A stretch of 64,000 nt of DNA from Bugula neritina (Eukaryota; Animalia; Bryozoa). This document shows positions 50,601-53,600 of the stretch, one piece after another; the stretch's first letter is position 1, and every line of letters begins with the position of its first letter. Where the stretch lies: positions 5,426,741 through 5,490,740 of the forward strand of contig OZ037768.1 of assembly GCA_964035545.1 (NCBI GenBank), written 5' to 3'. Under the pieces are notes generated by a model. That model was not told where the DNA came from, ran no database searches, and was given only the letters and a program-made list of their open reading frames with translations. Made by a program: the position numbers and the translations under genes.

Positions 50601-53600
50601 GAAGATGAGAAAATCTGTGGACAGTGTGATTTCGAGAATGGTAATGTATTAGTATTCTACTGATAAACTAACAGAAACTTTGTAGCTCAGAATGTAATTC
50701 AGAACCCAGTGTGATTGCTCAACAATACATATTATATATAACAGCTTTTGAAAGCATTTTCTGTTTATTCTTGTTAAATTAGTTTTGCAAAACTAACGCA
50801 TGCAAGTGTTGTGTGCTGATTGGTTGGCCCACAAAAGTAATTTTAGATGCTTCTAGAAAATGGATTGTCACAAAATAGTAATACACACGTGTTACTAGAT
50901 CGTCTAAAACTATTGTCATGTATACTCGTGCCCATTCCTAAATATTTCAGCTGCACTTGGATGTAGTCATAGGTTAGATAGCGGTTTTCTGATAGGTTTG
51001 GCCAGAGATTATCTCAGATATAGTCATCTTACTTAAACTTTAGATTATGTAGCAGTAGCTAATACTTCATCTTAAATTATACATTTTTACTATAATATTT
51101 AAAATGACAGCAAGTATAAATTTAGAGTAGGCTTTAATTGAACTTTAAATTGAGCACTATTTCTCTGTACTTCTATGTAATTTCTCTGTTTTCTTTGTTT
51201 TATTACTTCTTTGGTCTTTTGGTTCATGATAGCCCTTACTTATACACACAGTATTCTATGACACATTTACTAAGTAACCTTCAGTGTGTTAAGTTATTTT
51301 GTCAAGTCACCAGACTATAGCTTGGGTTTTTCACCATAATATTATAGTAAGTATGACCTAGTTAAAATAAAAATAGTAAGTATGGCCTAATTAAAATTAA
51401 CATAGTAAGTAATTAAAATTAAAATTTGATTCCATATTGATTTCTTGTAAGATGTAAAGTTTCATTGCTTACATTGGTTCAAAGTTTTCCTCTATATTAC
51501 TGGAGAACATTAAACTACATAGAAAATAAATGCAAACCACCAAGCCATAAATTTTGTGCTAGTGGAGGTTGTATTGATAAAGATACAAAAGCAAATTATT
51601 TAGCAATGCATATACATAGTGGTTTCAAGGCTACACAAATGCAGGTAGAATTGTGTTCATTGAATGTTCTCCAATACAACTTACTGAACCGACACTTTAC
51701 ATTAACTATTGTATCAATTGCTGGTGTCAAATAGTTCAAAAGCTAAATAATATTAAAATAAAAAATAAAGCAACATGAAACTTACAATTATTCTGCTCAT
51801 ATTCTTGCTTTGCAGTTGTAACTGCCTTCTCTGGTGCACTGCCTGTGTTGCAGTACGCTCCTTATACTCACGTATTTATATATTTTTTCAGCTTTTTCTG
51901 CATTGCCACAGCTTAAAGCTTGCATCTAAAGCTTCCTAATCAATGCCCATACACTAAAGTAGCTGTCAGTCATAATGAAATTGTGTAAAATATAAACAAT
52001 TTTTTGCTTCTTTGCTTAACAAAAAAAAATGTTTGCTGCGATCTAATTGTTATATTATTCTTGTATAATATTAGCCGCTGCAAAGTTAAATTTAACACTG
52101 ACTTTGTTAGTGTTTTATTGCTGTATACACCATTTGATGATGAAAAACAAAGATATAACTACACTGTTTTTCAAACATCAGCAATAATAATATGTAGATG
52201 ACTGTAGGTAGTAGCCTACAGTTTTATTTTACAATATAATATTATGATATGATAAGGACAGCATGTTTATTGAAGCGGTTTTGGATCATTCTGCCAGCCA
52301 AACTTGAATATGGTCTAAGCTTATAGTTGAGATGTTTAGTAGTCAGCAACAGTGAACAATTTAACTGTAAGCTAGTTCCTATTAAATCCGCCAGTACAGT
52401 AACAGTATAAATTATGATCACGTGACTATGCATACACCCGCAATAGAAATAATGAATGGGTGTACAAACACTCAGACAACTACAGTAGCGTGACGTCATT
52501 CAGTGCGCGTTGTAAAATCTTCTATTTTACTGAATAACTTTAATAGATTATTACTAACGTAATTGAAGAAAGGTGTGAATATAATATTTAATCACTTCAC
52601 AACGATTAGTGTTTGTAGCGGTATACTAAAACCGTAAAATCGCAAAATGTCAACTTTCACACCTCTAGTATTAAGTATGATCTGGTTGTTCAAATCACAA
52701 GTTGATTAGTTCTAAGCTTTGGATATGTGTGTCTGCGGGCACTACTGAACATCGATCGTCCGTAGTGAGTGATCTGTTCTAAATACACGCCCCTCTTCAC
52801 ACTTCCGTATGCTCTGTGGCGATGTCTAGTCGCACGCTGCAGTTCAAAATTGTCGGCTCCCCGACGCTGGGTTTAAAGGTATCATGGATTGTAATCTAAA
52901 TTGATGAAGTTTGTGATAACTCGATTTATGACATGTCCACTCGGGCACTGCTAAGCGCAGCTTGCCATTTTTTGTTAAATTTTGTTTCTATTAATTCTGT
53001 AGATATGTGTGGATGGCATGATGAAAGTACAGGAAAGTATGACTGGGAGAGACATCAAGGCTCAACTCCTTCCAAATTAACAGGACCAAACACCGACCAT
53101 ACTAAGCAGACTCCCAGTGGATGGTATGTCTTTGTAGATGCATCACAAGGATCAGGTGAGACCAGCTTTCAAAATTTGTTATTTTGCTTTTTCGAATTTT
53201 CACTGGTGTATATTTTTGCATTACCATTTATTGTTAGATCATAATATCTTGGCTTAGTACATCAAAACTTAAACCATAAATTGCACTTGATTGAAAACAA
53301 AAGAAAGACAGGTTTAGATTATTTTGCTACACTGAACACTAGTTAACTAGCGCCTATTTGTCAAGTAGCTGTACTCAAGAGCAAGGACTCTGTGCTGTAG
53401 GGACAGCTTTTATACAAATAGCTTTGAATTACACGTAGAAAAGCTTTGCTTTGCTTATAAAATTTCTCTACAGCTATAATGGCAAATCTGTAACTGTCAT
53501 GTATTCATGTTCCTTTCTCAAGTTTTATAGCTTTCTTGGCATATTTTTATAGCAGTTTGTATCTATCCCATTCTACAGGCATTACTCGAGCTGTTCTAAG

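Follow-up and report, generated by a model that had tools for sequence, protein, structure and literature searches.

The small nuclear RNA (snRNA) 7SK is known from arthropods, molluscs and annelids, and its occurrence tracks that of the HEXIM protein (PMC8406779). The mollusc and annelid 7SKs are those of Gruber et al. (2008, J Mol Evol), as cited in PMC8406779 and PMC2995076. Two paired GAUC motifs that lie 6-30 nt apart have served as a search criterion for 7SK, and in vertebrates and lophotrochozoans these motifs are flanked by bulged pyrimidines (PMC2995076). The conserved parts of the RNA are the hairpins SL1 and SL4 and the M1/SL0 stem (PMC10083321), the last of which is the closing stem of Marz et al. 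(2009), as described in PMC10083321. Here, we analysed a 64-kb stretch of the 216-Mb genome assembly of the bryozoan Bugula neritina (C4:5426741-5490740; hereafter the window, to which positions refer unless another contig is named), in which an earlier, sequence-only reading had proposed a hidden and highly diverged 7SK gene. Our analysis indicates, with a probability of about 0.93, that 52721-52973 on the forward strand is the single functional 7SK snRNA gene of this bryozoan, with transcription, RNA ends, protein binding and function predicted from the sequence. We favour this identity because the covariance-model match, the promoter of the RNA polymerase III (pol III) type, the terminal T run, the single copy, the conservation, a syntenic homologue and the genes for the partner proteins all agree.

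Hallmarks and promoter of the 7SK candidate

In a permissive 1-kb scan with 4227 Rfam families, positions 1-351 of the Arthropod_7SK model (RF01052) aligned with 52721-52976 of the forward strand at 31.7 bits (E value 2.1e-6). This full-length match, though below the gathering score, comes from one of the models that the sequence-only reading had proposed to run. Extrapolated in linear proportion to the 216-Mb genome (both strands), the E value for RF01052 alone becomes about 1e-4. A covariance-model match that runs from end to end at this genome-wide level means that the 7SK-like pattern is real and not due to chance. A default Rfam scan of the whole window returned two tRNAs only; it misses the 7SK locus because 31.7 bits is lower than the RF01052 gathering score of 44, which is a curation cut-off rather than a biological feature. 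The 7SK homologues found on other contigs, which are described below, scored 31.3-36.4 bits with the same model.

The four hallmarks named in the sequence-only reading, i.e., the pairing of the 5' and 3' ends, a hairpin with two GAUC motifs and bulged pyrimidines, a 3' terminal hairpin and a U6 end, are all present (Table 1), and they lie in a 253-nt island with 47% G+C compared with 31% in the surrounding intron. That reading was also right in placing the locus in an intron of a giant MAM gene, on the same strand, in taking the open reading frame (ORF) that starts here as spurious (the mechanical ORF 52933-53244 begins inside the RNA), and in describing the RNA as shorter than human 7SK (253 nt against the 331 positions of the Rfam model). 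Its wording "highly diverged" is fair in view of the Rfam score, and SL1 and SL4 are nevertheless well kept. The GAUC at 52754-52757 (RNA 34-37) pairs with the GAUC at 52771-52774 (RNA 51-54), with 13 nt between them; the pair is set inside a GAACA...UGUUC hairpin, and a bulged UC (52752-52753) precedes the first motif and a bulged U (52770) the second. The distal motif CAU(U/C)GAUC...UGAUCUG is common to human SL1 and the bryozoan RNA, and the loop of SL4 is UAAGC in the bryozoan and AUGUG in human. Both the spacing and the bulged pyrimidines are those expected of a HEXIM site (PMC2995076), and the 3' terminal hairpin with its oligo-U end and the long-range 5'/3' stem correspond to the LARP7 site and to M1/SL0, respectively (PMC10083321).

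Among the described families, the arthropod 7SK (RF01052) gave the best-scoring model. In the alignment with it, the posterior probability is high for closing stem 1-8, for the GAUC hairpin and for the 3' hairpin (GGCAcUGC..GCAgUUUGCC), where it is near 1, whereas the middle is poorly aligned and the bryozoan RNA has only 253 nt compared with 351 model positions and 444 nt in Drosophila (PMC8406779). With human 7SK (RF00100; PMC10083321) it shares the 5-nt loop and the pyrimidine bulge of SL4, the M1/SL0 stem, a possible alternative 5' pairing and the HEXIM, LARP7 and MePCE partners, but it is about 80 nt shorter and its central region is not recognisably homologous. The lophotrochozoan 7SKs, to which it can be likened by their published descriptions, belong to the same superphylum and have the paired GAUC motifs with bulged pyrimidines, the 3' hairpin with a U tail and a pol III snRNA-type gene in common with it; they are known from molluscs and annelids, whereas the present one is from Bryozoa.

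The promoter was compared with those of three U6 genes, U6atac, RNase MRP, U2, U4 and U11 of the same genome, using the upstream 100 nt aligned on the RNA start. These snRNA-type genes share a CACAC(C/T) core, taken here as the proximal sequence element (PSE). In the genes of the pol III class, the core starts at -63 and -62 (U6 a and U6 b), -64 (U6atac) and -65 (RNase MRP), while in those of the RNA polymerase II (pol II) class it starts at -59 or -60 (four U2 genes and U4) and at -58 (U11). The spacing is therefore class-specific, -62 to -65 vs. -58 to -60, i.e., about 4 bp apart. In the 7SK candidate, as well as in its counterpart in a sibling species, the core starts at -63, which is the spacing of the pol III class, and TATTA comes next, as it does in the pol III genes. 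At the position of the A/T box (-32 to -25), U6 has GTACAAATA, U6atac has TTTAAATA and MRP has TATATAA. The frequency of CACAC is about one per kb in the window, and the chance of meeting it in a slot of four positions is about 0.004. The sibling contig L047 has an identical PSE core and an identical -30 box. Apart from the terminal T6, the gene has no stretch of four or more T; given how often such stretches occur in the intron, about 2.7 are expected per 247 nt, and the relatives are alike in this respect. Together, promoter and terminator have the signature of an external type-3 pol III gene, which is predicted to be active.

During the promoter comparison, low-scoring copies without the CACAC core were also found for U6 (L004, C8:10041175-10041281), U2 (L054, C2:4070056-4070238) and U4 (L057, C1:18928840-18928994). 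They are probably pseudogenes or variant copies; the U6 copy has point changes and ends in T4 only. The U11 snRNA gene lies at L065:934-1058 (+), approximately C4:4868933-4869057, and matches the Rfam U11 family at 93.6 bits.

Table 1. Features of the 7SK locus and its host intron (window positions; RNA numbering counts from G52721, promoter positions are relative to the RNA start)
Feature	Position	Strand	Basis or remark
7SK snRNA gene	52721-52973	+	predicted 253-nt pol III transcript, start G52721, end in T6 run; RF01052 match
PSE core CACACC, then TATTAAG at 52669-52675	52658-52663 (-63 to -58)	+	same core in the snRNA-type genes of the genome
A/T-rich TATA-like box TTCAAATC	52689-52696 (-32 to -25)	+	same place as in pol III genes
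Closing stem M1/SL0, 5' strand GGAUAUGU	52721-52728 (RNA 1-8)	+	pairs with 52931-52938
Distal SL1 hairpin, predicted HEXIM-binding site	52747-52779	+	paired GAUC motifs; motif definition PMC2995076
ACAC-UUCC, putative alternative partner of the 5' end ("linear"-type pairing)	52799-52806 (RNA 79-86)	+	RNAalifold and minimum-free-energy fold
Closing stem M1/SL0, 3' strand ACAUGUCC	52931-52938 (RNA 211-218)	+	complementary to RNA 1-8
3' terminal hairpin SL4, GGCACUGC-UAAGC-GCAGCUUGCC, predicted LARP7 xRRM site	52944-52966 (RNA 224-246)	+	covariance-model alignment
T6 pol III terminator, 3' oligo-U tail (U248-253), predicted site for the LARP7 La module	52968-52973	+	sole T4+ run in the gene
Host intron of the MAM/LDLa gene, GT..AG, phase 1	50641-53002	+	splice sites read; flanking ORFs match Pfam Ldl_recept_a and MAM

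Copy number, conservation and partner proteins

A BLAST search of the genome with the 253 nt recovered the locus itself only, and a whole-genome look with a dedicated covariance model (R1, see below), in which a subset of the candidates was scored, gave one place at 210.9 bits. As a single place was found by both approaches, the locus is not a dispersed repeat, which the sequence-only reading had raised as a reason to doubt it; the 216-Mb genome holds a single copy.

Homologues in relatives were sought through the host gene. Metagenome contigs were queried with the next MAM exon (window 53590-53904), which yielded three contigs, L022-L024 (ENA ERZ1740056, ERZ1740059 and ERZ1740062), whose MAM exon is 51-53% identical. 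All three carry a 274-nt Arthropod_7SK match (33.5-36.4 bits) upstream of the MAM exon and on the same strand. The homologue lies in the same MAM/LDLa intron, as the intervening exon is preceded by an acceptor of compatible phase and has the same CGW motif at its start, and the distance from the end of the RNA to the acceptor is 134 nt compared with 29 nt in the window. The source of these contigs is probably another, distant bryozoan, because the sample ERZ1740056 contains a HEXIM with the conserved blocks of the HEXIM proteins of the window genome and of Watersipora.

A protein search with the same MAM exon also led to contigs from the Logan runs SRR4020080 and SRR4020082, in which the exon is 95% identical. 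We consider their source to be a sibling species because the runs hold a 79%-identical HEXIM. One of the contigs, L047, has the 7SK at 2404-2656, and another, L048, has a 5'-truncated copy. Between the window and L047, the 7SK RNA is identical at 252 of 253 positions, the single change being in the 3' hairpin loop. Identity is 88% in the 300 nt upstream (35 changes), 81% in the rest of the host intron and 83-91% in the following introns, and the two flanking exons are 97.4% and 94.6% identical (21 changes in 468 nt). Fisher tests of the RNA gave p = 6e-9 against the upstream 300 nt and p = 1e-3 against the exons, which shows that the 7SK RNA is more constrained than the adjacent coding sequence.

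No third lineage was added. When the MAM exon was used for a profile search, most matches were giant multi-MAM proteins. No 7SK was found within 1.4 kb upstream of a similar exon in L066 (Logan SRR31840194), which is probably a paralogous MAM exon, nor in an 88-kb MAM gene (L068, GCA_041260155.1) with either R1 or Rfam, and the metagenome loci L025-L046 gave no 7SK match. A further Logan contig of 12.3 kb (L067, SRR32575149) contains an uninterrupted MAM/LDLa ORF of 3487 amino acids without introns; evidently, the contig derives from the spliced transcript of a related giant MAM gene in another sample.

The model R1 was built from the alignment of the window RNA with L022-L024, using the RNAalifold consensus in which M1 replaced the alternative 5' pairing, and six sequences were realigned to it. 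Over its 74 pairs, 93% of the cells hold standard pairs, and this falls to 34-48% if the 3' partners are shifted by 1-3 columns. Four pairs have double compensatory changes; two of them belong to M1, and a central helix and the 3' hairpin have one each. Among the eight pairs of M1, A-U became G-C and U-A became C-G in the distant relative, with one further one-sided change and one broken pair; in SL4, a G-C pair became A-U. Several further pairs show one-sided changes via G-U. All nine pairs of the GAUC hairpin are invariant in the six sequences and two lineages, as is a small GUCGG/CCGAC hairpin. The sequence-only reading, which had called for folding and a search for covariation in related genomes, is supported by the compensatory pairs as well as by the invariant GAUC hairpin.

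Unconstrained folds of both lineages pair the 5' end (GGAU, GUGU) with ACAC-(U/G)UCC at RNA 79-86 instead of M1. Forcing M1 is cheap, at -72.0 vs. -74.3 kcal/mol in the window RNA and -86.3 vs. -86.6 kcal/mol in L023. The two pairings of the 5' end recall the "linear" and "circular" states of human 7SK (PMC10083321). Because the alternative pairing showed no covariation in the alignment of the window RNA and its relatives, it is treated here as possible only.

The genes for all three protein partners that the sequence-only reading had expected, HEXIM, LARP7 and MePCE, are present in the genome, with the xRRM of LARP7 below threshold. HEXIM is encoded by one intron-less ORF (L005:1042-2139 on the reverse strand, C4:6935628-6936725) with a Pfam HEXIM score of 103.6 bits. 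It has a basic arm with the basic stretch RKQRRNQKRKRKWKPY (RKRKWKPY) and the motif APYNTTQFLM, which contains PYNT; in human HEXIM1, the PYNT motif inhibits Cdk9. Its best named relative is the HEXIM2-like protein of Watersipora subatra, a cheilostome bryozoan, and the HEXIM relatives thereby also mark the genome as bryozoan. The Pfam match falls in two stretches; a long insert of low complexity separates the PYNT region from the C-terminal coiled-coil block. The HEXIM of the sibling species is 79% identical over its full length, though nearby introns are 81-91% identical in DNA.

Seven La-motif loci were found in the genome, of which the one at C4:17.16 Mb is LARP7: its La-motif exons and RRM1 have human LARP7 as the best PDB match (E value 1.3e-8). 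The xRRM exon gave no sequence match in PDB. The PF08777 locus at C4:4.90 Mb is a genuine La, L012 is LARP6-like, and L014 and L015 appeared by eye to be LARP1-like and LARP4-like, respectively. For MePCE, exons at C6:12.93 Mb have MePCE as the best PDB match (E value 7.6e-15); a Bin3 locus on C3 was rejected as BCDIN3D-like.

Competing explanations

Several observations weigh against a functional 7SK gene at this locus. The Rfam score does not reach the gathering score, and the single-sequence fold is hardly more stable than those of shuffled sequences (z = -1.56). The -30 box is a non-canonical TATA, and the promoter motifs of the distant relative are only loosely similar. The covariation comes from only two independent lineages and from an alignment that was fitted to R1. 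In LARP7, the downstream exons are collinear but have only sub-threshold Pfam matches to RRM_3 and xRRM. Moreover, a whole-genome look with the vertebrate 7SK model (RF00100), in which about 20 of thousands of candidates were scored, gave no match. The same kind of look with RF01052, also with about 20 of thousands of candidates scored, gave no match either and missed the known locus itself, which makes both looks uninformative.

Many 7SK retro-pseudogenes are known in mammalian genomes (PMC8406779), and the locus could accordingly be a non-functional relic, a pseudogene or retro-copy derived from a real 7SK gene elsewhere in the genome. The low Rfam score would fit a relic, and the whole-genome covariance-model looks, which scored only a subset of the candidates, leave some room for such a gene. 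A retro-copy, however, lacks a PSE and a -30 box of its own, which this locus has at pol III spacing. A relic would also be difficult to reconcile with a sequence that is the sole copy by BLAST and the dedicated model, that is conserved at 252 of 253 positions next to flanks of 81-91%, and that has a syntenic counterpart with compensatory changes in a distant relative. We regard this explanation as highly improbable. The synteny could be read in another way, namely that the host intron contains a conserved structured element, such as a regulator of MAM splicing, which merely resembles 7SK; the sense orientation, the distance of 29 nt to the acceptor and the presence in the same intron of the distant relative are what such an element would show. 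However, an element that acts in cis would need neither a PSE at pol III spacing nor a G start, an end in a T run and an interior free of T4, its distance from the acceptor is not conserved (29 vs. 134 nt), and the model match spans both of the 7SK-specific ends. This possibility, too, seems to us scarcely probable.

Slightly more weight, although still very little, can be given to a 7SK-like paralogue with a diverged role, or to one that pol II produces in part from the host intron; neither would be the canonical regulator of P-TEFb. Drosophila has a second 7SK-like RNA, snRNA:7SK:94F, for which such an origin has been proposed and whose gene is likewise nested in the intron of a protein-coding gene (PMC8406779), and the present locus is also intronic and on the sense strand. 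The Drosophila gene differs in being a second copy with internal T runs that has been argued not to be transcribed by pol III, whereas the bryozoan gene is the sole 7SK candidate in the genome by BLAST and R1, its promoter is of the pol III class and no T4 occurs inside it. In addition, the hairpins for HEXIM (GAUC) and LARP7 are its best-conserved parts, contrary to what a diverged role would suggest.

The reading of the locus as the likely functional 7SK of this lineage, which had been put forward from the sequence alone, is thus supported by the model match, the promoter, the single copy, the near-complete conservation, the compensatory pairs and the partner genes. If it holds, pol III would transcribe the gene from its own type-3 promoter (CACACC at -63, A/T box at -30), starting at G52721 and stopping in T6. 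By analogy with the human and fly systems, the 253-nt RNA would fold with the 5' and 3' ends joined in the closing stem M1. The distal 5' hairpin with its paired GAUC motifs and bulged pyrimidines is predicted to bind the basic arm of HEXIM, the terminal 3' hairpin and the oligo-U tail to bind LARP7, and the 5' G to be capped by MePCE. The RNA-bound HEXIM may then hold and inhibit P-TEFb (Cdk9/cyclin T) via the PYNT motif, which would restrain the release of paused pol II.

Host intron, neighbouring genes and meaning for Bryozoa

The host intron is 2362 nt long (GT at 50641, AG at 53001-53002) and interrupts a MAM domain, with CDFEN on one side and (D)MCGW on the other. The 7SK gene is on its sense strand and within its last 282 nt, and the T run ends 29 nt before the acceptor. 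Given that only 52974-53002 remain, the polypyrimidine tract of the host intron must be there or overlap the 3' end of 7SK, and the same probably holds for the branch point. The two tRNA genes of the window, tRNA-Pro(UGG) at 16232-16303 (+; 56.6 bits) and tRNA-Ile(AAU) at 37703-37776 (+; 64.4 bits), bring the number of pol III genes on the MAM/LDLa strand to three within 64 kb. Contig C4, which is of chromosome scale (24.8 Mb) and has animal genes, also carries U11 (4.87 Mb), La (4.90 Mb), RNase MRP (6.54 Mb), HEXIM (6.94 Mb) and LARP7 (17.16 Mb) in addition to 7SK (5.48 Mb); that they share a contig may be a coincidence.

The finding itself is expected biology, and the gene is a member of a known family. 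Only the conserved nesting and the near-isoenergetic 5' pairings exceed what routine annotation would give. Taken jointly, they would mean that the nesting of 7SK in one MAM/LDLa intron has been kept across deeply diverged bryozoans through a coupling of both genes, and that a minimal 7SK of 253 nt keeps two near-isoenergetic pairings of its 5' end, "linear" and "circular". We consider this joint reading unlikely. Couplings that are possible under it are an effect of pol III occupancy, or of a structured RNA near the 3' splice site, on the splicing of the host, and a modulation of the 7SK output by transcription of the host gene. If the two 5' pairings have indeed been kept, the conformational switch of human 7SK would be ancestral to bilaterians.

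The only papers brought up by a full-text literature search that combined 7SK with bryozoa deal with bryostatin and HIV latency, and an earlier listing in the primary 7SK surveys is possible. As far as was searched, this is the first 7SK of the phylum Bryozoa. 7SK scaffolds the control of P-TEFb and hence the release of paused pol II, and the fast-evolving 7SKs of invertebrates are routinely missed; the bryozoan sequence extends the known range by one phylum. Together with its relatives, it could sharpen the covariance models for lophotrochozoans. The comparison of snRNA-type genes also provides a promoter grammar for this genome, in which CACAC(C/T) marks pol III genes at about -63 and pol II genes at about -59. 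As a natural minimal 7SK, the bryozoan RNA points to the closing stem, the GAUC hairpin and the 3' hairpin as the indispensable parts of the molecule.

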